DNA of 63,712 bases, filler included, from Pelomyxa schiedti (lineage: Eukaryota > Protista > Evosea): assembly GCA_020536535.1 (NCBI GenBank). It is 9 parts of 9 records of this genome, joined end to end, with 100 filler letters (N's around TTAATTAATTAA, not from the genome) between each part and the next. Parts side by side here need not be neighbours in the genome. Positions count along the whole stretch, not along the records: positions 31,999 to 46,834 come from JAHLWZ010001163.1; 8 more parts are not named here. One strand, written 5' to 3'. The notes below the pieces were generated by a model. The model did not search any database, was not told the DNA's origin, and was given only the letters and a program-made list of their open reading frames with translations. A program made the position numbers and the translations under genes. Of the stretch, positions 31,378 to 47,156 are shown in pieces (the first letter of the stretch is position 1; the number at the start of each line of letters is the position of its first letter).

Positions 31378-32816
31378 TCACTTCAGCCTCGGTACCGACC
31401 ACGAGAACCATCTCAAGGAGCCATTAAAAAAAAAGGGCACTGGCTCTCAACGAAGCCGTTGTCAGACAATTCAGCTATACAGATGAAGGGAAGAAATGAT
31501 CATCTTAACCTAAGTACGAATGAACGAATTTGGCTTAAGATGATCCTCAACAGAAAAACAAAAGCAACTTGTCTTCACTCTCCTGTGTGTGTGGACTTAG
31601 GCCTGGCTGGCACGCAGGTACTCGAATATGAGCATTCTCCACAGCTTGATTACAAACATCTCTGCCTCATCTTCCAGAACGTTGGTGAGCTGATCAAGAA
31701 GTGATTCTAGTGCAATGTGCTCTTCCAGTTTACCTGTTTGTGTTGTTGGTTGTTGGATGATGGTCTGTGGTGGGGGAGTGAATCACTCACTGGTGACAAA
31801 CTGCATGAAGGTTTCTTCTTCCTCACCAAGGAACTCGACGATTTTCTTGGAGACCCACGGCTTGATCCGCTTATCAATAATTTGAAACTGGATGGAATNN
31901 NNNNNNNNNNNNNNNNNNNNNNNNNNNNNNNNNNNNNNNNNNTTAATTAATTAANNNNNNNNNNNNNNNNNNNNNNNNNNNNNNNNNNNNNNNNNNNNGG
32001 GTGCCTGCTTGGTGGTGGGGCTTGCTCCGCCGCCTTGTTGGGTGCCCTCCTGATTGCCCAGGCACTGCACTGCCGCCTCGTGTGGTCAGCCCCACTTTTT
32101 CAGAACAAAGAAAAAAACCGTTACTTCTCCAGGTGTCTGAGAAACCTACCACTAATCTGGTGGGACCCTGAGAGAGGTTCAGGGGACACCAATAACTGAT
32201 ACTAGTACCTTGAGAAAGTGGGCACATGATTGTTGGGGGTTATAACCAAAGCAATTCACAATTAACTCTTATGTTTGAATTCGGGTTCTTTCTCCCTTAC
32301 TACACAAGTCCAACAACACCAACACCCCAGCACACCTCACAGTGCAGTGGTCACTATCCAAACCCAATCTCTCCACCAGTTTTCTTCCCAGAAGTGATAA
32401 CCATGATCGATCCCCCATAATGTAACTGACTGTCTCGGGGGTATAAAGACCGATAGAGGCTAGAGTCGGTCAAATTACCGGCGCAGGGCCAGGCGCATAA
32501 CGTTTTTGTCATTCGCCTTTTACTAATGAGCAACCGTGCTCCTGGTCGTCATTAAATGCGCTTTGATCACGTATTTTTTAAATGAGGGAGGCTCCGGCCT
32601 CTCTCAAATGTTAAAAAAAAAAAAAAAACAGAAATTTCTTATGGACTTTCTCTTTGCCCTGACAGGCTCAGCCCTGTTGAACCCAAGCACGAGTACCGTC
32701 AAACATGGTGTCTGGACTTCAATTCCCAACGGGTTGTCCAAAGAGCACAAACTCGTTGTGTTGCCACCGCTTTTTGTGTTCTCTCGACTTTTTTTTCCCC
32801 ATCACTTTTTACGGAA

Positions 32817-35207
32817 ATGTCGGACACGCAAGCTACTGTACCCGAGGTCGTTTCTACAACCACAGCCTCTGTTGTTGTTTCAGATCTTAACCCCGCGATC
32901 CCCGTTCCTTCCACTACAACAACAACTACAACGACAAGCGGTGCCGCCGCTCCGACATCTCCAGTAACCGCGAACACCCCGCGTCGCGTGGTAAATTTGC
33001 GTGGTGTGAAGAAGTCTCCAACTTCGGCCCCCCTGAACTCCTCGTCTCCTTCGCCCTCCGCCGCGGCAACGGCGGCCGCCGAAGCCGCCGCCGACTCGCC
33101 TGCGCAACAGCGCCAGCACAAGCTCTCGCCGCCAGTGGCGTCCCCGACGCTGCGTGTTACTTCGCCGGGGGCGGGAGCGTCGCGCCCGCGGATGATCCCC
33201 ACTTCGACTCGCTCGCCGGCTACGACGACGACGCCCGCCTCCGGGGCTGCAAATCAGGGTGACCTTTGTTGGAACGACACCAACACGGCGGAGGCGGCGA
33301 GAGTAGGACCTCCGGACGACACCACGGGATTGCCAATATGGCGCTTCGACTGGCCGTGTGGATTTGCCAAACGCATAGAGGGAGCCGAGTGCTCTTCCAA
33401 AGAAGCTGCTGCGGAGAGCACAGGGATGCCTCCACCTGAAATTGAAGGTAATCCAGCTCCACAACCCAGTGCTCAAGGCGAGACTGCTGCAGCGGAGCAA
33501 GCACCCCCTAGTACTGACCTCACAGCAAAGGTGCAAATCCCTCCACCAAAAAGGCCGAATGTTACCCCCAGCCTAGAAGCATGTGAAAACGAGTACAGAC
33601 TATGGCGAGAGTGCGACAAACTGCGGTCAAAATATGAAACCCTTGTCCATGCAGTACTTGGAATTAGTAGTCATCTTTCACCATTCCCATCGCTTACAAT
33701 CCCCAAGGTGCCCCTGACGAATCATTCAACAGGTGGCTCTATGACCAACTGGCATGTGCTGGTGCTTCTTCACAAACAGGTAACTTGTCCTTCTTTTGTT
33801 TTTTGCAGCTGAATATGTCTGTAAGGTCTTCTAAAGAACCCTAGTGTTGCTCAAAAAACACTGGTGTTGCATGAGCAACTACTTGAAAATTTTCCATCAT
33901 CTGTTTATGTAAGTTGGTATCAACGCAAAAATAGGAATTCCATTCTGCACGCACTACACAACTACATTCAAAGCTGCAAAGAATGGTTGCAACATGCTGC
34001 GCAGGATTACAAAGCAGCAGGAATACAAGAGTTGGCATCTTTCAAGACAGATATTGTAACAATCCATGAAGTTCTAGATGGTGCAACACAATTTTCAAAG
34101 TATGGGCCAGAAGAAGATGATGAAGAACACATTTATGAGCTGATGAAAATTGAAGCCAAGAAAGTCTCAGATGCCCTTGCTCCGGTGGTTAAGCCCTTGA
34201 TCGATTACCTTGTTGACAGGCTGTTGCATTCAACAAACAAAGTTATTTGCCGTTTATCTGGTGCAGTAGAACCCCACAAACTCGGAGTCAGGATAAAAAA
34301 ACAGTCAGCACAGTATTACCATGTCGTCTACCGGGATGACACCATCCGCCTCACTAATATACACTTTGACAAGTTGCGTGCCCTATACTTTACCAACTCG
34401 CGATGCCTGTGGGACAAGTTCCCTTATTCTTTATACACAATTTTGCGCCGCTATACTACTTTCTTTGGGTCTTCAACTAGAGTAACTGCCAAACAAAGGG
34501 AAGGGACTACCTTTCATGCAGCTGCCCCAGAGACTGTATTCACGTTCTTGCATAACACCTTTGGCGTGAGCTATGAATGCTTTGCCTCACCACTCAACTG
34601 TTTCTTCCCACAATTTTGCTCAGCATTCTACGATGTGGATTGGGTCTTTGGATCACAAGGGAGTTTCTTTGACTGGGAACCCCCACAACAAGGCGGAGTG
34701 TTTGAAGTTGGCCCACCCTACACATTGGGTGTAATGAACATGTGCGCCAAACGACTCTTGGAATTAATTTCTCAGTCTGATAAATCCAACGCTACTGACA
34801 CCATTGGAACAACAACCTCGACTACAGAGAGCAGCAACCAATTACCAGCACCAAAGCAACCTCTCACTTTCTTCGTTTTTGTTCCAGAGTGGCGTACTCC
34901 TCCTGCGGAATACCATCTAACGTTGGAAGCAGCTCCTTGTTTGCGCCATACCTTCGCTGCTGAAGGAAAGAAACACTCCTATGTTGTGGGAGACCAGCAT
35001 GATCGCTTCGCCAGACACTTCGTTCTGCCATTCTCAACTCGGGTCTATGTACTACAGAACAACGAAGCCTGGGCAAGAACACCCTTTTCAGCCGAAAACG
35101 GACAGCAACTTACGGAACAACTTGTCAATGCACATGGTGAAGAAAGTGCCGAACCACCACACCCCAAGAAGTTCGTATCTCCATCTCGTTTCTATGTTAG
35201 ACGCTAA
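32817..35207 (+). CDS. PCIF1: PCIF1/CAPAM-like cap-adjacent adenosine N6-methyltransferase homologue
   Basis: HFDKLRALY, ILRRYTTFFG and FHAAAPETVF...FGVSYECFASPLNCFFPQFCSAFYDVDWVFGSQGSFFD...FEVGPPY...PLTFFVFVPEWR match the PCIF1 catalytic domain. The N-terminus is Pro/Thr/Ser-rich. Confidence 0.85.
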
Positions 35208-35331
35208 CTCCGCCACAGGTCCCGCTTCTCATTCTGAAACACAAACCAAAAAAAAAAACAATCGTCTCTTCAAGAGACGCTTCCCCCTTGCTTCCTTTTT
35301 TTTATTTAGATCAAAACAGAGAAGTGAAAGG

Positions 35332-37002
35332 ATGGACTCAGAGGCTAGGCCGCGCCGAGCGCGGATGACGTCGAGGGAGCGGGTGCTGGCCGCAGTTGCA
35401 CATGACGCCAGCGCCACACCGGACCGCGTGCCGGTGGACCTGGGCGGCTCCGCGGTGACCGGGGCCCACGCGTGCGCCGTGACGGCGCTGAGGAGGGAGC
35501 TGGGGCTTGGACTGGGCGGCGGAGGGCGCGGGGTCAGGGTCACGGAGCTTTTCCAGATGCTGGGCGAGGTGGAGCCCGACTTGGTGGAGGCCGTGGGCGC
35601 CGATGTGTTGCCACTGGCTTCTCCGAGAAATTTCGCTGGGTTTTCTAATTCCGGGTCTGTGGAGCGTCCTGGAGGACGCTATCATACTTTTTTTTTTCCC
35701 CCATCAGATACATATTCACGTGCTATGATAAAATGTGATAAAATCCCCTTGTGAAAGAGGAATTTTATAATTTGTACCTACTCTCTATTTGGGCTTACAG
35801 GTTCTCAGATGGAAGCCATGGAACTTCCATGACGGAACGCCTTTACTAGTGCCTGAACTGTTCAATATAACACCTGAGCCTGATGGGACACTTTTCCAGG
35901 CAAGTTTTGTGTACTTGCTTACACTTTTAACAAAGCATAGTATCCTGAAGGAGACAGAACTGTACCTCCCTCACTGAGATTGGCTCCCAAAGGTTGCATT
36001 ACCATGTGTTTTTTTTTTCCCCTGATCAAGCTGTGTTAGGCTATTTTTTTGATGCTCTTGATAGGCAACAGTATCCAATTGATGATGCCACCCTCAGAGT
36101 AGAGGATAACACTGAGGAGTTCAAACAAATATCACAAGAGGATCTCAATTTTTATTCCGAACAAGCTCGTTACTTGTATAACAGTACTGACAAGGCTATA
36201 CTGTTCAACCCTGGTGGTTTGGCCTTTGGAGATATTGCACTTGTGCCAGCTCCTTGGTTGAAAAACCCTAGGGGCATCCGCGGCATTTCTGAATGGTACA
36301 TGAGCACTGCTACAAGAAAAGAGTTTGTCTACAAAGTATTTGAGTCACAACTTTCTGTTGGCTTGGACAATTTGCGCCGGTTACATGATGCAGTGGGTGA
36401 ACAAATACAAATCATATTCACATCTGGTACCGATTTCGGCATGCAAGTATGAGGAAAAAAAATGTATCCCCTCAACTAAGAGGTAAAGACTGGAACTCTT
36501 ATATCGCCAAGAAGCTACCGTGAGTTGTATAAACCTTTCCACACCAAGATAAATGAATGGATTCACAACCACACAACTTGGAAAGTATGCTGGTTATCCT
36601 CAAATTTTAATCGCAGAAAGTGAAGTAAGCCTTTAATCTTTTCCTTAGACTTTCATTCACTGCTGCGGTTCATGTGTTACGCTTATAGAGGATTTCATTC
36701 AGGCCGGATTTGATATTCTTAATCCAGTGCAGTGCTCCGCCGCCGGCATGGATCCAGTAACCCTAAAAACAAAGTTCGGGAGGAGGATTGCCTTTTGGGG
36801 AGGAGGTGTTGACACTCAGAAAACTCTCCCGTTTGGAACACCCGAGGAGGTAACTGCCCAAGTACAAGACAGGCTGCGGATATTTGGAGAAGGTGGAGGG
36901 TATGTCTGGAACACCACCCACAACATACAAGGCAATGTCCCATCACAGAACATCGTAGCCATGTACCGCGCCATACACCAATACAACAACCAGCATTCCT
37001 AA
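35332..37002 (+). CDS. Uroporphyrinogen-decarboxylase-fold / MtaA-CmuA-like methyltransferase family protein (bacterial type, with introns)
   Basis: MTSRERVLAA...PDRVPVDLGG, GTDFGMQ, FIHCCGS...EDFIQAGFDILNPVQCSAAGMDP and FWGGGVDTQKTLPFGTPEEV...GGGYVWNTTHNIQ. Confidence 0.88.
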
Positions 37003-37624
37003 CAGTGCACAGTACTCACAACACAAAACCCCAAAATGAACACCCTGTCTCTGCAATAAACGCTTTCTATCTCCCAATCTATCTTTGTAATTCTAGTCAA
37101 TTGGCTGGTACAGTCTTTCTCTGTCACTTTTACCGTTTCGTTCCTTTCACTGACATCAATAATCAATGTTTGCATTCGTGCACAGCGAATTGAACTCACA
37201 CGAGATAACTTTTCGTTTGGGGAATTGTGATGGGGAGACCAAGTTGGGGTGGAGCAAAGTATCGAGAAATGACACTGAAGAAAGTTTCAGCTCCGAGAAC
37301 ATCGAGGCGAAAATCATTCCTAGTTGCTATGTATGGAAGGCATGATGTCTGATGTGTGATGAGTTTTTGCTGGAGTGCATTAGTTACCCGCTGTGTGCAG
37401 AACCTCAACGAAATAAAGATAAAAAAACTTAAAAAAAAACGGACACGCCACACGAACTGCTACCGCTCGACACTGACTGCGGATCTAAGACAATGCAATC
37501 ACCTGTGCGCATCCGTCCATCATTTTTGTTTGCTTGTTGTTTGTGCACTTTTTTGTTTGGAGCGGTGGCACCATCAAAGTCCTCTTTGTGTTCGAATGCC
37601 TCTTGCTAATAAAAGCAACAGATA

Positions 37625-39307
37625 ATGTCTGCGCCGGAATCCCCCTTACTGGATACAGACCTGTCCCCCCGGTCTCCAACGCCTTCTCCGTCGCCTCCTC
37701 CTCCATTGTCGCCTTCCTCATCGCCGCAATCCCCTGACTTCTTAAGATCAACGTCACCTTCTCCCGTGCCACCTTCCGAGAAGAAACGAGTAAGTTCACT
37801 CACAATTGTGTGGTTAGTATTCACTTTTTTTTTTAGCGGTCTGATACTAGAGCTTGCCAAATGTGGTTACGGAGACGAACAAGTAGTGAAACTTCTTCTA
37901 CTTCTCCTTCTAATTTATACCCCCCAGGTCGTCAACTGCAGATTACCCGAGATACAGAACAAACGAACCCATATAACACTCGAAAGAGGCGCAACAGGAA
38001 ACCTGCATACTGCTCCGACTCCTGTTCTGATGATGAGGAACCTGCTTTGATAAGCGCACCGAAATCCAGAGGACCACTAAAGAAAGATGGTTCTGTCTTG
38101 AGGGCAGGGATAATTATCCCTTCGTCAAATTCGATCTCACCAATTGGCACACCAACATCTGCTTCTGTGACGCCCACTCCCTCCCCAACATCTTTAATTC
38201 CTGGAGTCGAGGTAACATTCTATTTTTCTCATCTTGTTAGCTTACAATAACAGAGAAGAAACACCAAACAAAAGCCAAGAAGGAAGAAGGCTACTTCAGA
38301 GTCTCTGTCAGAACAAGTGTGTCTTTTGTTGATTGTATCTTTCTGACTTTTCTACAGCCCAGTTTATCTTGCCGAGAGAGCAAAACAAGGAATTCTGCTT
38401 TTGTGCCTTCCAGTGCCTCTGCTCATCGAGGTTAAAACTATTTCTGCACAGTAGATAATTTACCCGTTCCTGTAGATTCACACCACAAACATCAAACGAC
38501 TCATGTAAATATATGCATGGGTATCTGGAATGCTCAGTACTACCCCGCGCAGCAACACCTACTGCAGAGCCTTTTTCCATTACCCCAACCGTACCTATCC
38601 TATTATGCGGCTGACCCCACTCTTATCTGCCGTATGGTGAAATACCAACGGAAAATGGTCGCAGGGGCACAGCAACCATGCTGTTGTTCATGCCAGGTAT
38701 CTTTCCTTTTCTCTGCTTTTTTCCCTAAATCATTATAGGGACCAGTTCCCCAAGCCTCAGATGCACAGTCGTCCTTACAAAAGGAAACCAAGAAATTCTC
38801 CCCACAATGTCATAAAGCAGAATCGGCTCCCTTTCTACACCATCCAACCCCCAACAAAACTCCCCAATATAACTCGACCCAACCTCAAATCCTTATGGAT
38901 CCCCAGCTAAGCAGCTGCAGCTTTTCTAGTGGGAACTCATATTGCTCCCAACCGCACTCTACGATACCGTTATCTGACACCAACCTTCCACCTGAGTGGG
39001 CCACTCTTCCCCTTCTCCAGCTTCCTCCTGACGACTCGGAGGAAGAAGACACGGTATGATTGGTCCCACACTATTCCCATTGTTTAACACACCGCTGCAG
39101 ACACCACCTGTGAAAATACCTTTGAAGCAGACTCCTCTGGAGAACGCACCGGCAGCTACCTTCGCAAGTAAGCGCACCCCAAGCATCTTCCTCAGCATAC
39201 TTATGTAACGTTCACAGTTGGTTCAGAGGATTGAACCGAATGACAGTAACAAGTCCCGAACAGTCGATCTTTGGTCCACCATGAGAGATTCATTGTGTGG
39301 TCACTAA
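37625..39307 (+). CDS. Hypothetical low-complexity Ser/Pro-rich multi-exon protein
   Basis: A series of exon-like ORFs with gt/ag boundaries and basic patches (RKRRNRK, KPRRKK). The 3' end is uncertain. Confidence 0.4.
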
Positions 39308-39644
39308 ACTTCCCAAAGAACTATTTGTATGGTACTTGGTGTTCTTCTAGACTCTACGAAGGGAAACAAAAAACAAAAGATTTGCGTTTGCGGGAATCGA
39401 ACCATTTCACCACAAACTTAAATTCACATAACAGTATCCGTACCCGGACCCTCTTTCTCCCCAGGAACAGAAGTGATTCGGATTATCGCTCCGGTGAATT
39501 GTTGGCAATGACTTGCACAACACAATGGAAACACTCTCATTGAGGCCACACAACGCATTACGTACGATGACCAGTTACAAGGAAATAGGGAATTATTTTC
39601 TTTGGGACTTTTATCGGAATTTGAATTAGAAAGAATCGATTGTA

Positions 39645-42177
39645 ATGGAGGTTTATGTCAAGATGTGGACGGAGGAAACGGTCATACTCGAGCTTGCGGG
39701 GCCAGGGGTCTCCATTGAACACGTCAAACAAGCAATAGAAGGCAGCACTACCACCACTGTTACAATTCTAACAACCGCCAAGACAAAGAAGGCATACCGC
39801 CGCACAGACAAACCCTCATATATGTAGGGAGACAGATGGAGTGCGGTAGAACACTGGGTGACTACAACGTACAGCGTGGCTCTACAATTCATCTCCTACT
39901 TCGGCACAACGGTCTTTTCGGTGCTTTTGTGCGTTTCGAACTACCTGGTGGAGAAAAGAAAAGGTTTTTCTGGGAGTCCGTCAAACGTGACCTCAAGGTT
40001 TTCTTCTTTTCCCAACTCTCCCGAATAAAATAAAAAGGTTAAAGACCTGGTTTCTGAGTGTGCAAAAAGAGTGCACATAGTATATCGGGCAGAAATCAAG
40101 GGGAAAATAGCCTCTGACGAAGACTTGATTACAGATGACCATTTTCATCATAGTGCCCTTAGGGTCAAACTTAAGGACATTGAATCAGAACAGCAAACTC
40201 AAAAAATATCAACCCTGGAACAAGAACTCAATCAAATTAAAAAGCAATACCAGAACCTACAAGTACAGGTAGAGTACCTGCACCAACAGTCAATTGAGTT
40301 GCAATCCCAAGTTGATAAAAAGACTGAGGAGGTGCACAACACGGCAACCCACATCACCCAACTTTCAGAACAACTCCAACAACAAGTAGACGTCAACCTA
40401 CAGCTGAAAAGGCAGATTGCAAAACAGAACAACAACAGAGAACAAAGGAAGGAAGGGGAATTTTCAATTCTTTTAGAGGAGTTAGCTCACTGTACGTAAA
40501 AAGAAGTATATTTTCTCACATTGAAATCCAATTTAAGATAAAGAGACATCCAATTACCACAAATTGAAAGCCAAGACAGGTTGTTGTTAATTCTTGTTCT
40601 TTTGTCTCTAATGATACAATTAAGCCCAAGAAGAAGTGGCCATGTTGAAAATAGAAGTACACGAAGGTTTCCCTATTCTCTATTCTTCTCCCCATCAACA
40701 AAATGCAACTTCAAATGCAGAGCACCACAGGAGATCTATTGAAAGAGCTTCAAGAATGGAGGAAAAATTTGGCACATTCAAAAAAGGGAGAATGTCACTG
40801 ATTGAACTGAATAACCTAAGTCTTCAAGACGCTGTTGTTCTTGGGAATGGGGGATATGGGAGTGTGAGTAGGGTGAGCGTAACTGACTCCACAACAACTG
40901 ATGATAGTAGTTTTCATGAAGCTATTCCCAAAAGGGTTGCCCTGAAGATGATGTTCAACTACAGGGCAAGGAGCAGCAGTACCCAGAAGTCTGAGTTTGA
41001 CAGAGAGTATGAAGTTGCACTTCTGTACCCTCACTGGTCTATGACAAATGTCTACAATTACTTTCGCGGGGACATCCAGACTTGCCTACTGCCAAAGGAG
41101 ATGCTTGGTACGTGTGCCCTAATTGACGAAAACGAAAACTGGGTGTCAGGATGTGATGATGAGAGGCGTGCCATCCCAATGTACAAGAGGACCACCTTCA
41201 TGACGATGGAGCTTGGCACAGGAAGCTTGGAATCTTTTATATCAAAGAAATTTGGGAGGAGCCCTTCTGCCCAAGAAAGCAACCCCTTACTTGATGACAG
41301 TGGTGGCACAGTAAGCACTAATAGCAGTAGCAGAAGAACCATAATGCAACTTGGGTTTTGCCTACTCAGTGCCATTGATAACATCAACTCTCACAACTGG
41401 TTCCACTGTGACATAAAGACAGACAACATCTTGTCAATGGAGAGGGAAGGAATAAGAGGTAGCATGTGGGTGCTCTGCGACCTGGGTACTGCCATTTACT
41501 CGTCATCACCATCAGCATCATTCTCAGTGCCAAAAGGCGAGTTCATTTCGGGAAACCCAGCAAACCGCTCACCAGAGGTTACCAGGCCACATTCTCAAGG
41601 ATCAAAGCTGATCCTGCCTTTGGAGAAGAATGACGTGTGGGCCACTGGCTGTGTTTTGTATGAGGCCATAAGTGGTGTCCACCCCTTCTTGAAGTCCAAC
41701 ATCTTGGATGTAAACAACATGTGCAACACCTCACAGCCTCCCGTAATCCCACCACTGCAACCTCAACCTCCACACAGGGGTGCTTACCCAGAGTGGTACG
41801 CACCAGCTGCTTCTCTCACTGCACACTTGCTTGAGAGAGACCCCAAGGCAAGGCCTAATTCCACACAAGCCATGCTTATATGTGGTGCTTTGATGTTCAT
41901 GCCTGAGCAGGCTGACCCAGCAGAATTCTACAGCAACCAAGACAGTGTAAAGGATGTGCTTATTGGAATACTAGAGGAGAACTTGTCAACCATCACCAGC
42001 ATGGCAAGCACCACCTCAACTAGTGCAAAAAATAGCGCTCATGAAGCTGTGACAGAGGTGGAAGTTACCCAGTTCTACTGCCTTGTGTTCACCAACCTTG
42101 CTTTGAAGCACCTCACATTGTTTTGCAAGACCATGAGCTCATTCTGTGCTGCCAGGGCATCGAGGTATGTACCATAA
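39645..42177 (+). CDS. Ubiquitin-like domain + coiled coil + PINK1-like Ser/Thr kinase
   Basis: The spliced Ubl reads MEVYVK...VKQAIE|[44 protein letters not shown]-rich coil follows. The kinase has [40 protein letters not shown] and DVWATG. Confidence 0.85.
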
Positions 42178-42381
42178 AACAAAGGCAGGTGGCAGTTGAA
42201 TACAACAAATTTCTTTTTTGGGCCCAGTGTTGTGGCCAATCCACTGAACAGCCTCACCGGTGTCAATCTACCTCTAAACTACACCCGCTTCACAATTGAC
42301 TTCAGATTGTGGCTCTGAAAACCCTGGTCCGACTCCAGGCACCCACATAATTTTTTTTTGTTGTACATATGTTTATGTTGG

Positions 42382-42872
42382 TTACTCTGTTGGCATCCGG
42401 AATGAAATTATGTGCCTGTATCCCAATGGTTTCTGACATATGACAATGACATTGTGGCCCTCAGCAAACTCCTTTATGATGTCCTCTCCCACTTGACCTT
42501 CTGGTAGGCCAACCTGCTTCACATTACATTTGTCCGTGACAATTGTGCACATTTTTCTCTCTACGTCCACATCAATAAGGTCCTCCTCTATCCTCGGCAG
42601 TGCATCCTTGTCCCTTCATGATCAGCACAACATAAGATAGAGGAGGGGGAAACAAAAACCAGTTGGTACGTTGCGGTGTGGTTTTCCTTATAGGTATGTT
42701 GGCCATCCATCAAATCAACACCCTCAATCCCCACAGGAAGACGAAACATGCGGCTGGCCCTGGCACCCCCGGTTCTCGTTGCATTGGTGCAACTAGTCAC
42801 TTGGCACAGGTGACCCTTGAGCATGACAAAGAACCCGTTCCTCACATCGCGGCACGTGATTTTCTCCATCAT
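42382..42872 (-). CDS. Divergent eIF5A paralogue (one predicted intron)
   Basis: CRDVRNGFFVMLKGHLCQV, VGIEGVDLMDG, EEDLIDVD and LPEGQVGEDIIKEFAEGHNVIV align with the eIF5A N- and C-terminal domains. The KTGKHG loop is absent. Confidence 0.75.
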
Positions 42873-43015
42873 CGAGGCAGCAGCAAGTGCTCCACGTCCA
42901 AGCAGTTATGGGAGAACGAACACGAAACCACGGACGGTGGGGTTTCAACTCCTACGTTTGAAAAAAAATGGGTGGGCTGGGCATCAATCACTTCTGGTAA
43001 GGCGGAACAAAAGTT

Positions 43016-44718
43016 TTATGCTTTTGGTACAACAAAGTGGTTTGACTGGAATGTTGTGTGGTTGTTGGAATTGGATTTAGTCCATTGGTTCAGTAGTGCT
43101 CGTTGTTGTTGTTGTAGTGGTGGGTGTGTAGCAGGTCCTGTTGCTGTTTGTAAAAACCACTTAGAAATGGGTCTGTCACTGGATAAGGTAATACCGTATT
43201 TGACAAATAGACTCAAGAACAACCAATATAGTTGGTCGCTATGCAATTCAAGTAAGTGGTGAGAGTGACTCCATTAAGTCATCTTACCTTATTTGCAGTT
43301 TTCAAGCATGAGCTTATTACAGCGGCCAGGTCGGAGGGCCACGAGCGTGGTATTTGTGCATGCCTTCCACTAATAACAGCACTAATAACCTTGCTGGTCT
43401 TCGTATTTCCATAAGGCTTAGTTTCAGAGAATATCTCCAACAGGACAACTCCAAATGAGTGTCTGGGGAAGGTAAGTGAGGAAGGGGAAAGGGCAGAAAA
43501 TGCTAGGCACATACACATCAGATCCGATTGAGGCCGGTGATCCACTCAAGACCTCCGGGGCTGTATACCAGGCCGTCCCTTGAAAGGGTTCATCCATACT
43601 TACAGTGTCAACACCATCCTCGCAGGGAAGACAAGAACCCATGTCACCTAACTAATAAATCGAAAGTTAATGATAAGCTGATACTACACCCCACCTTGGC
43701 ATTCATATGCGCGTCCAGCATGATATTGTCGGGTTTGAGGTCTCTGGAGGAAAAAAAACGTCACAAGTTTCTTTCTTTTGTAAAAACTGGAAAACCTATG
43801 AACAATACGCAGGTCATGAAGGTACCTAAGCCCTTGTGCCTGTTTGGAAAGTAAGAGTTGCCAAGTTAAAAACAAAACAAACCACATCTTCAGAAATTTT
43901 AAGCTTTGTGGGGTAGGTAAGAGGCGGTACACATATGGAGGCCAGTTGACCAACTCGCTCAGATGGATACAGAACAAAGCTCAGGTCATATAGCATCCTC
44001 TCAAGTACGAGCATTATTTGAGGGGAGGTAGGACACTCCCCAATGGCTAGATTGGTAAAGGAAATCACGATTCAACCTGATAAACAAAAAGAGGATTATA
44101 CCAAGTAGGGTCACAAGGTTAGGGTGATCAAAGGACCTAATTGTTGTCAAGCACAAAAAAAATGAAGTGGAGTTACATCTGGGCCTCTTTTAGGGCCTTA
44201 TCTTTATCCTTTAAAACTTTGATTGCAACTGGTGCTCCATGAAAGGTTCCTTTTGGTTTTTAAAAGGAGAAGATTGAAGGGTTTGATTCATATTTTCATA
44301 CCTGAATAGACAGACCCAAACGAGCCCTCTCCAAGTACACTACTGAAATCACATGTTAGTGCGCCGCCATATGCAACTCGCGGTTTAGGAACGGCAACAG
44401 CTGATTCCTTTGAGTTTTCTACTTCTTGCAAATACACATATGCAGAACCCATCTCATCCTGGTATAGATAGTGGGACTGTGATAGAGCGGCCTGGGAATC
44501 TGATCGCTTTTGAAACTTTACAAGAACCATGTGTTCATTTTTCATCAGCTTGACTTGGCATCTGTTTGCTGTTAGGGTGCTTAGTTAGTGGTAACTCACA
44601 TATTGTGCGGTGAAAAGGCGGCTCGAAGGTGTTTCTTAATATCTTTGGTGAATCGGCATCGGCCTTCCAAGCCACACACAACCAAAAAACCGGCAGGGAT
44701 ACGTGCTACACAAGCCAT
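43016..44718 (-). CDS. TKL-family protein kinase with an RRM-like N-terminus (multi-exon)
   Basis: LGEGSFGSVYSG, VAIKVL, QGLRYLHDLRIVHR|DLKPDNIML, GTAWYTAPEV and SDVY|SFGVVLLEI. Confidence 0.85.
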
Positions 44719-45197
44719 ACTACTAAACATAAAGAATAAAAAAAAAGGGGTTTACTTATTTGCGGCACACGATTTGGGAAAAAAAAAAGCGCGAAAAAAA
44801 AAGTACAACCAACCCTTGCAAAACACAGGGATCTCACAGAGACTCGAACATTCTACGTCGTCGACATGCCCTCGTTGCGGTGCAACAATGCAGACTTCAT
44901 TGTTCGGCGAAAAGATGAAATTATCTTTGATTCACAACCAGTCCCCTCCAGGAATGTCACAGTGGGAAAACTACAAAACTATAAAACTACACTGAGTGTC
45001 AGAGTCACCAAACTGGAACTCTAAAGCGTTCCTCAGTCTATTCCCCAAGGCTCCCGATTTAGAGCTGTCATCACCTGACACCATATCCCTGCTCCACATA
45101 TTGTGGACTTATAAGCAGGAAAACCAACGGACTCCAAACTGCAAAAAAAAAAAACCAACTAAACAAACAATCTCACCACCAATACAACACAACCAAG

Positions 45198-45764
45198 ATG
45201 ACGGTTCTGGGTCAACTCCCACAGACCCCCAGTATGGAAAACAGGTACTGTGTCACATTTCCCTTATTTTTTCTAATTTTTGGTTCCCACAAAGGAAACA
45301 ACTACCACTTCATCCTCTGCTGCTGAGACCCCTATGCCAGACTACAGGCGTTTCAAGCGTATCGACAAGCTCTACAGCCGCCGTTTCAAGCGTATCAACA
45401 AGCTTCAGGTACAGACCAGCAGTTCCCTGGGCAGAGGCAAGTTGTCATACCCTCAGAATCAGAAGTACATCCTCCCCGTAAGAAAGGCAGGACAGCAATG
45501 GGCAAATCCCCTTCTCAATGCCATCCTCCCGTAGTGCCCAACAATAGGCAATCGCCCCCGTTGTTGTCGTACTACACCCAACAGACAATATCTATCGAAG
45601 AGCTGGTAGCTACGATGGACAAGCTGAATGAACCACTTCGAGTAAGGCTGGACACCCTCTCCCGCGAAGGCCGGGAAAGACACGCAGAGATGATGCGAAG
45701 GTTTCAGCAATTGGAGCAAAACATCACTGATCTTCTGGGTCTACTTCTATCTGACTCTGAGTGA
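45198..45764 (+). CDS. Small hypothetical protein with an internal RRFKRI(D/N)KL duplication and a coiled-coil end
   Basis: Exon-like ORFs are present, and cgtttcaagcgtatcRacaagct occurs twice at 45349-45404. Confidence 0.4.
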
Positions 45765-47156
45765 GCTTGAAGAATGTCCTTTGTTTAAAAAATCTTCTTC
45801 CTTCTGTTATCGCACATGCACCCGGATAAACGATAGGAGTCAGTACTTCTACTACGTGCGCGGCGATCTCGTCGTTGTTCGTGTGTTGTTGTGCCATTCA
45901 TGTACGAGGCAACTGCTGTTGTAGCAGCCCCCGACACCAACATCGTCAATGAAGTTTGTGCTTTTATTTGCCCCCAAAACTACGACCACACGATAACCCG
46001 ATTATGGGGCTGCGAGCACTGGACACCTCTGATATGGATATGGGCGTACTCACGCAACATACGAACTTCATTCACAGCTAATGGTTGAATTTTGTCATTA
46101 TAATTACATTAGTATTTTCTTTGAGGATACGGCTTGTGGTTCGTAAGTATGTATTACATTGACATGATAGTAGTAGTAACTCTGTAGTGCAGAGTTCATT
46201 GCGGTGCCGGACAATTATTAATCCCTCGAATTGGAACTTGGAACTGAAAGTAATTTTTCTCCTCTCCCCTTCTGTACAAACTCTCGGGCTATCACTTGAG
46301 CTCCATCAGTGAATTCTCGCAATGAAGCTTCTAAAATCAATTTCTCGGTGTTTTCTTCCACAGCAAAATCCAATTTGCTTCCAGACTTTTGTAGTCACCT
46401 AATGATTCCCCGCCATGTGCACATTCCAACCAAGTTATTATTCACTTCAGTAAGGATCACCTACATCTTGATGACATTTCCAAGGATTCTCCACAAATAA
46501 TAAATGCTCCACCCTGTAGTTCTGCGTTGTGATGCTCAACAGGGAAAGAAGCGGAACTCCAGGATACAGTACGTGGAAGTACCGCATACAAAATGGTGTG
46601 GCTATCCCACTCTTTTCCTCTGGTCAATAAGGCAAAAACATAAAAAATCTGGGTTTTTCCCAGAGAAAATTTTTACGAAGTGCCCGCCAAAAAAGGAGTC
46701 AAAAAAAAAAATAACAAAGTAATAATAACAGTGGGTCATCATCGTCCGTCGTGTTGGGATTGGGTTCGGGATCGCCGCATGCACAGTATTCATTCTTCCT
46801 GTCTGCATTGAGTTCTCTGCACCCGTGCAATTTGNNNNNNNNNNNNNNNNNNNNNNNNNNNNNNNNNNNNNNNNNNNNTTAATTAATTAANNNNNNNNNN
46901 NNNNNNNNNNNNNNNNNNNNNNNNNNNNNNNNNNATTCAGTGGACGCACAGCACAGCATCATGTGCCATTGAATTCCCAGAAGTTGTCCGACTTCTGAGG
47001 GTGCTCAGGGCCGACTCTGTGATTCCCTTTTTCGGGAAGTCATCACTTTCACATCATCCCCCTCTCGAACAAGCGTGTGTCCCCACACGCGTTACCCTCG
47101 TGGCAGACGAGTTCACAATTTCTTCAGGATGCCGCTGCTGCACTCATGTTGGTCTT

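Follow-up and report, generated by a model that had tools for sequence, protein, structure and literature searches.

A ubiquitin-like domain ahead of a PINK1-like kinase in the anaerobic amoeba Pelomyxa schiedti

The locus and the gene model

The window, i.e. the whole stretch of DNA that was analysed, comprises 63,712 nucleotides (nt) of the Pelomyxa schiedti genome (assembly GCA_020536535.1), filler between its parts included. Here we describe one gene in it, located at 39645-42177 within the stretch 31999-46834, which is a single contig of 14,836 bp. A model of five exons on the plus strand, read from the three plus-strand frames, gives 2358 coding nt, or 786 codons, in an unbroken frame (Table 1). 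The encoded product starts with a ubiquitin-like domain (Ubl) derived from ubiquitin, continues with a short linker and a coiled coil of about 105 residues, and ends with a kinase domain that carries a helical C-terminal extension. The kinase is related to PINK1 (PTEN-induced kinase 1), which is linked to Parkinson's disease. Nearly all work on PINK1 has been done in animals, where it phosphorylates ubiquitin and senses damage to mitochondria. In P. schiedti we see a PINK1-like kinase that has no mitochondrial address, that is most likely fused to a close copy of ubiquitin, and that belongs to an anaerobic amoeba. On balance, and with modest confidence, we favour the view that a single gene here specifies a soluble protein, about 786 residues in length, with a Ubl, a linker and a coiled coil in front of an active-looking PINK1-like kinase, and that this protein is part of an expansion of at least 25 paralogues with interchangeable N-terminal modules.

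The ATG at 39645 is the first one of the frame, because an in-frame TAG stop is found five codons upstream (approximately 39627-39629). Exon 1 ends precisely at the point where exon 2 resumes the register of ubiquitin (residues 31/32), and the frame of exon 2 stays open for 28 codons beyond the ubiquitin homology, with no stop, as far as a GT. Exon 3 has no ATG over its 151 open codons and therefore must join an upstream coding sequence. The linkage of the exons is supported by the lack of an ATG in exon 3, by the open frame of exon 2 and also by the GenBank model of this gene, in which exons 1, 3, 4 and the kinase are joined. Based on these features we infer that the Ubl exons are most likely spliced in frame to the kinase. 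The sizes of the introns in the model (40-46 nt) fit the surroundings, since the four introns of nearby genes that are confirmed by RNA are 47-51 nt long. The latter are all of the GT..AG type, with 5' ends GTA(A/T).

There are several points that weigh against this gene model. Intron 1 requires a rare GC donor: the ubiquitin register across it is kept by GC donors only, the alternative donor 3 nt downstream being likewise GC, and the GC-AG class makes up 1.59% of the introns in the P. schiedti genome (PMC8887013). Introns 1, 2 and 4 have weaker donors than the RNA-confirmed introns nearby, and several other in-frame solutions are possible for intron 2. The RNA evidence consists of contigs from three single-cell RNA runs of one study. 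The contigs cover 40137-40287 (exon 3, one contig), 41039-41189 and 41369-42201 of the gene, while the region 39363-40136 is without an RNA contig in all three runs (the upstream plus-strand gene terminates near 39362), and the junctions of the Ubl are thus neither confirmed nor refuted by RNA. Finally, the GenBank counterpart of the gene, P0001 (Pelo_16664; 703 amino acids, 99% identical), has a different structure, in which intron 1 is read through and exon 2 is removed by an intron of about 245 nt. A GT-AG version of intron 1 was also considered and rejected, as the sole GT donor would remove the ubiquitin helix.

The missing RNA contigs over the Ubl region, the weak or rare splice signals and the public model could all be accounted for if the Ubl exons were outside the kinase mRNA, either as a decayed ubiquitin fragment upstream of the gene, or in the way given by GenBank, with exon 1 read through and exon 2 lost within the long intron. 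We consider this explanation improbable. Both halves of ubiquitin are intact, in order and in register, without an internal stop, and the reading frame of exon 2 continues past the end of ubiquitin up to a GT. The confirmed local introns are 47-51 nt long, not about 245 nt. Translation of the public model would yield one half of the ubiquitin fold with out-of-frame residues behind it, and the model also drops about 50 residues directly before the kinase domain, a segment that is conserved in all paralogues. The sequence itself is confirmed by an independently assembled DNA run that matches the window over 39644-42253, and a mis-assembly at intron 1 is accordingly improbable. The public model further adds a 3' intron and a tail. 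The RNA contigs in exon 5 show no splice, and one of them (41864-42201) contains the stop codon at 42175-42177 within unspliced sequence, which speaks against the added intron. We note that Pelo_16664 is mis-modelled in GenBank in three places.

The ubiquitin-like domain

An earlier inspection of this DNA without database searches (the sequence-only reading) had described the N-terminus as a close mimic of ubiquitin with a Ser at the position of ubiquitin Ser65 and no terminal GG, and the searches agree with it on each of these points. Exon 2 matches the Pfam ubiquitin family PF00240 with an E value of 5.7e-13 (48.9 bits, cut-off 25.4), and in the alignment with ubiquitin residues 32-75 the two sequences are identical at 28 of the 44 positions (64%, E about 6e-14). 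Exon 1 aligns with ubiquitin residues 1-30, with 13 identical positions; it is weak alone (E 1.6 versus mono-ubiquitin), yet its top matches are all ubiquitin. Taken over its full length the Ubl is about 55% identical to ubiquitin, which is close enough for it to be a fairly recent ubiquitin derivative.

The alignment places the Ser (codon TCT, 39881-39883; residue 66 in the joined numbering) at the Ser65 position. Thr66, Ile44 and His68 are also retained. All four positions are kept as in ubiquitin and the Parkin Ubl, i.e. the Ser65 substrates of PINK1; in contrast to Parkin, the Ubl of the window is joined to a kinase and not to a RING-between-RING (RBR) ligase. There are clear differences from ubiquitin as well: Arg replaces Lys48 as well as Lys63, neither Lys11 nor Lys29 is present (Lys6, Lys27 and Lys33 are retained), Leu8 is replaced by Trp and Val70 by Leu. 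The tail reads R-H-N-G-L, as compared with R-L-R-G-G in ubiquitin. Because the GG is missing and the frame runs on, the Ubl is, judged by its tail, a fixed domain that is neither cleavable nor conjugatable and does not serve as a modifier.

The sequence-only reading also took the Ser as a retained phospho-acceptor. The Ser is indeed present, but we see no evidence that it was selected as a phospho-acceptor: since the exon 2 half of the domain is 64% identical to ubiquitin, retention of this residue is the default and is uninformative in this respect.

As a separate observation, the HMMER alignment of exon 2 continues a few residues into the next repeat of polyubiquitin, and the sequence pattern of the stretch 39914-40130 would suit a beta hairpin. 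This stretch may be a decayed second ubiquitin unit, and there is a hint in it that the Ubl descends from a polyubiquitin gene. The Pfam scan gave no ubiquitin signal in exon 3.

The kinase domain

The open reading frame 40625-42177 matches the Pfam Pkinase family with an E value of 3e-17. Its catalytic core is complete, with the Gly-rich loop, the beta-3 Lys, the helix-C Glu, the catalytic Asp, Lys and Asn, the D-L-G Asp, the P-E motif and the Arg of subdomain XI all in place. The solved animal PINK1 proteins (Tribolium, Pediculus and human) share a number of features with it. The signature A-x-K-M-M-[FY]-N-[YF] after strand beta-3 is common to the family of the window kinase and to all 19 animal PINK1 representatives. 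The octapeptide ALKMMFNY, which the sequence-only reading had listed as a PINK1 feature together with the GN...PEV activation segment, is identical in Tribolium PINK1, and the pattern G-N-x-x-x-x-x-P-E is likewise shared with PINK1. Nine residues past the beta-3 Lys, all 19 animal PINK1 representatives have a Ser, in a column that we take to be the autophosphorylation site of PINK1; within the Pelomyxa and environmental family the window protein is the only one to have it. In the window kinase this Ser sits in an S-S-S run, and its presence in the column could be a matter of chance.

An ordered insertion is predicted between strands beta-4 and beta-5, at what is presumably the position of PINK1 insertion 3, although its sequence is barely alignable to the latter. 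The helical C-terminal extension is also shared with PINK1, and the superposition holds to residue 465 or so of the model and to residue 574 of Pediculus PINK1. In contrast to PINK1, the window kinase has H-C-D for H-R-D and D-L-G for D-F-G, and it is without an insertion between helix C and beta-4.

Relationship to PINK1

The position of the kinase among known kinases was investigated with sequence, profile and structure searches. When exon 5 was searched as a single sequence against solved structures, the 10 best matches were all PINK1. A family profile, made of eight members and including no PINK1, was then compared with the solved kinases: all 12 distinct PINK1 sequences came out on top (103-77 bits), and the next one was ULK1 with 57 bits. 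A model of the kinase was built with AlphaFold2 (AF2) from an alignment of 60 sequences, and its mean predicted local distance difference test score (pLDDT) was 90.3; an earlier AF2 run with 8 sequences reached a pLDDT of 57 and was discarded. In the Foldseek search with this model, ranks 1-23 were all PINK1, with about 480 aligned columns versus about 360 for other kinases. VIA-align 2 gave Z scores of 31.2-27.4 for PINK1, with 322-371 residues aligned through the end of the C-terminal extension, and the next best structures were BIKE and AAK1 (Z 26, about 285 residues). PINK1 is the nearest known kinase by sequence, by family profile and by predicted fold.

One might object that the protein is a generic, divergent Ser/Thr kinase and that the likeness to PINK1 is convergent or superficial: the identity to PINK1 is only about 20-25%, all kinases score a Z of about 25 against the model, and the N-terminal targeting region of PINK1 is absent. 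This appears very improbable to us. In the profile comparison every other solved kinase falls 20 to 45 bits short of PINK1, and the alignments to PINK1 structures are 40 to 90 residues longer, owing to the matching C-terminal extension. PINK1 and the window kinase have the motif past the beta-3 Lys in common, and the tree groups the family of the window kinase with PINK1.

This tree was a quick IQ-TREE calculation on 83 domains, with fragments and most of the 150 matches left out: 21 Pelomyxa domains, 12 environmental ones, 19 PINK1 domains, 14 other single-domain proteins, 14 tandem-kinase domains, both P0049 domains and the additional domain of P0003 (the latter two proteins are described below). 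Branch support was expressed as the Shimodaira-Hasegawa-like approximate likelihood ratio (SH-aLRT). The window kinase falls in a clade of 16 rows (99 SH-aLRT), 15 of them from Pelomyxa and one of unknown source. This clade is nested in a Pelomyxa clade of 23 rows (99), which in turn is part of a larger clade that also takes in environmental proteins (92-93). The animal PINK1 domains make up a clade of their own (95), and a split with 95 SH-aLRT sets the family, P0049 and animal PINK1 apart from the tandem multi-kinase proteins. It weighs against our reading that the tree comes from a quick search and that its outgroup consists of unnamed proteins.

The sequence-only reading had called the protein a PINK1-like kinase, for which it proposed a profile search and a phylogeny. 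Both were run, and the name is justified insofar as PINK1 is nearest by sequence, profile and fold. The kinase is not an orthologue of PINK1, however, because the tree puts it in a Pelomyxa-specific clade: it is a member of an expansion that stands beside the animal PINK1 clade and not inside it. A separate clade, with at least 25 copies in one amoeba, is thus a further difference from PINK1.

The paralogues and the search for other Ubl fusions

An exhaustive search with the profile retrieved 49 proteins at E < 1e-30, of which at least 25 are from P. schiedti. The remaining members of the family come from metagenome contigs that look eukaryotic. Animal PINK1 appears from about rank 57 on, and the other high-ranking matches are tandem multi-kinase proteins whose individual domains score lower. 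A large and previously undescribed expansion of PINK1-like kinases with exchanged scaffold modules is exposed in this way; in the literature we found no description of it, nor of a fusion between a Ubl and PINK1.

The P. schiedti paralogues have in common the kinase with its extension at the end, and a helical or coiled-coil stretch before it. Their N-termini, on the other hand, are conspicuously varied: Sel1 repeats, actin, ankyrin repeats, leucine-rich repeats, armadillo repeats, FKBP, MSP, a second kinase-like domain and long coiled coils are all found. As the paralogues carry unrelated modules at the same position, the Ubl is best read as one front-end module that was swapped in, and it may be only one of many adaptor modules.

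The fusion of Ubl and kinase appears to be a singleton among 152 related proteins and six related loci, which also has to be counted against our reading. A phmmer search with exon 2 among the 152 other related proteins retrieved found no further Ubl fusion, and six-frame scans of the six related loci found no other ubiquitin-like exon, while the control, i.e. the window itself, was recovered at E 7e-49. Pfam searches of the N-termini of further relatives gave no Ubl. Furthermore, no orthologue was found in the protein collections with which the conservation of the architecture could be tested.

One relative needs to be mentioned separately. P0049 (KAH3759533.1; locus L006, 6001-9101), from the same genome and the same PINK1-like group, is annotated as 'PTEN induced putative kinase 1' and has two PINK1-like kinase domains (approximately residues 279-489 and 692-963), as opposed to one in the window protein. 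It scores 117 bits against beetle PINK1, versus 38 bits for P0001, and in the tree its kinase domains branch outside the expanded family. Searches with residues 1-175 of P0049 gave matches of which none was significant: the sole Pfam match was ubiquitin at E 0.21, di-ubiquitin aligned across its two units at E 0.35, and the nearest clusters by ESM features were ubiquitin and Rad60-SLD, at 0.85. These weak similarities suggest that the N-terminus of P0049 may consist of tandem Ubl-like modules.

We note three further observations on the family. In P0003, residues 65-325 form a second, diverged PINK1-like kinase domain ahead of the usual one, with the sequence A-L-K-M-x-Y-N-Y and an altered catalytic loop; this extra domain may be a pseudokinase. 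At L004 8186-10944, two P. schiedti members of the family, P0005 and a Sel1-repeat kinase, are direct neighbours in opposite orientation, an arrangement that fits expansion by local duplication. Lastly, at L001 12442-14691 a gene for a USP/UCH-type deubiquitinase lies 2 kb downstream of an environmental family member, on a metagenome contig of 482 kb.

Localisation and possible function

The earlier statement that no presequence and no transmembrane anchor are visible holds true. No membrane segment is found in any exon, the highest mean Kyte-Doolittle hydropathy over 19 residues being 1.14, and there is no mitochondrial presequence because the protein begins directly with the ubiquitin fold. 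The presequence, the transmembrane helix and the N-terminal helix region of PINK1 are all missing, and in their place the window protein carries a Ubl and a coiled coil. The coiled-coil stretch of exon 3 comprises 105 residues with no Pro and one Gly, and in its best heptad register 57% of the a/d positions are hydrophobic, versus 19% elsewhere.

The order of the domains and the pattern seen in the family point to a cytosolic, probably dimeric kinase in which the N-terminal module sets the partners or the location in the cell. The coiled coil would dimerise the protein and thereby replace the membrane-bound dimerisation of PINK1. Within such a dimer the kinases would be able to activate each other in trans, and the Ser nine residues past the beta-3 Lys is a possible site for this. 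The Ubl, with its intact Ile44 patch, would position the kinase on partners that bind ubiquitin. The Ubl might in addition be a substrate of the partner kinase within the dimer.

Chains that contain both a Ubl and a kinase are known from other systems. IKK-beta and TBK1 have a ubiquitin-like domain after the kinase domain, and the Ubl-domain kinases of the PI4K-gamma group are found in plants. In these proteins the Ubl is used for regulation or for binding of partners and not as a substrate, and TBK1 dimerises via a helical scaffold. The kinase families, the domain order and the origin of these proteins are unrelated to those of the window gene, and their ubiquitin-like domains are far more diverged from ubiquitin.

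The sequence-only reading went one step further and proposed that the enzyme brings its substrate or pseudosubstrate with it in the form of the Ubl. In this case the Ser at the Ser65 position would be phosphorylated in cis or across the dimer, giving a tethered phospho-Ubl signal outside any mitochondrial context. A number of features are in line with this suggestion. Both the Ser and the Thr of the Ser65 loop are retained, and the Ubl, which is close to ubiquitin, is paired with a kinase of the one group for which phosphorylation of ubiquitin is known. In common with PINK1, this kinase has the KMM[FY]NY motif and the C-terminal extension, along with a predicted ordered insertion at the presumed position of insertion 3, and it is the only one among the paralogues with a Ser at the autophosphorylation column. 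The linker and the coiled coil would be long enough for the Ubl to reach the active site, and P0049 may also begin with tandem Ubl-like modules, as indicated by the three weak pointers given above. Against this stand the default character of the Ser at 64% identity, the unrelated modules that about 25 paralogues carry in the place of the Ubl, and the S-S-S run, which may have put a Ser into the autophosphorylation column by chance. We therefore regard phosphorylation of the Ubl by its own kinase as a tentative and rather unlikely explanation, and prefer the Ubl as one of the interchangeable N-terminal modules.

P. schiedti, as an anaerobe, has organelles without a respiratory chain. It is conceivable, if somewhat more doubtful still, that a PINK1-like kinase has here become fused in nature to the Ubl on which it acts, and that the dimer makes a built-in phospho-Ubl signal in the cytosol. 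If this were true, ubiquitin phosphorylation of the Ser65 type would be older than animals and not tied to mitophagy. Across the expanded family, such phosphorylation might instead help to deal with endosymbionts or with cargo of another kind. Were the Ubl a substrate, its fusion to the kinase would be 'Rosetta stone' evidence for an ancient link between the kinase and ubiquitin, as well as a compact system for the study of Ser65-type phosphorylation; should the N-terminus of P0049 also be Ubl-like, the link between Ubl and kinase would be recurrent in the Pelomyxa lineage. If the Ubl is not a substrate, the gain is still a useful correction to the GenBank model, along with a lead to a kinase family not yet explored.

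The biological background is in part documented. P. schiedti, an archamoeba, is an anaerobe, as the sequence-only reading had supposed, and its genome paper makes no mention of ubiquitin or mitophagy (PMC8887013). In Entamoeba, a relative of Pelomyxa, homologues of PINK1 and Parkin are stated to be absent (review, PMC9796589).

Table 1. Exons, putative introns and kinase features of the gene at 39645-42177 (window coordinates).
Feature	Position	Strand	Description
Exon 1	39645-39741	+	Start ATG; equivalent to ubiquitin residues 1-31; one-residue insertion
Putative intron 1	39742-39782	+	41 nt, GC..AG; CTAAC-like branch site 12 nt before AG
Exon 2	39783-39997	+	Equivalent to ubiquitin residues 32-75, plus 28-residue tail; Pfam and ubiquitin alignment
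Putative intron 2	39998-40037	+	40 nt, GT..AG; weak donor GTTTTC
Exon 3	40038-40491	+	Linker and coiled coil of about 105 residues; 151 open codons
Putative intron 3	40492-40537	+	46 nt, GTACGT..AG; identical junction in GenBank model P0001
Exon 4	40538-40579	+	42 nt, 14 codons; frame also kept if skipped
Putative intron 4	40580-40624	+	45 nt, GT..AG
Exon 5	40625-42177	+	Helical lead-in, PINK1-like kinase domain, C-terminal helical extension; stop TAA 42175-42177
Beta-3 Lys in ALKMMFNY to Ser nine residues on	40945-40974	+	Lys AAG 40945-40947; Ser AGC 40972-40974
Ordered insertion, beta-4/beta-5	41074-41187	+	About 38 residues; three short strands in AF2 model, pLDDT about 95; alignment
Catalytic loop H-C-D-I-K-T-D-N and D-L-G	41404-41481	+	Asp 41410-41412; D-L-G Asp 41479-41481; invariant columns
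C-terminal extension	41917-42174	+	Three long helices; superposes on PINK1 C-terminal extension (AF2 model)

Neighbourhood of the gene

Two short segments that flank the gene differ from their surroundings in read depth. In the intergenic region upstream (39443-39528) the independent DNA assembly splits into short contigs with a depth of 54-169, versus 29-39, which suggests a dispersed repeat in the promoter region. Just 3' of the gene, the segment 42299-42344 has a depth of about 8600 versus 39 in the DNA run and of 340-770 in all three RNA runs, i.e. it is a highly repeated, transcribed element; ARAGORN found no tRNA in the piece of the contig that includes it. The next gene downstream, at 43044-43642 on the minus strand, encodes an unrelated kinase-like protein and has two introns confirmed by RNA (51 and 49 nt).

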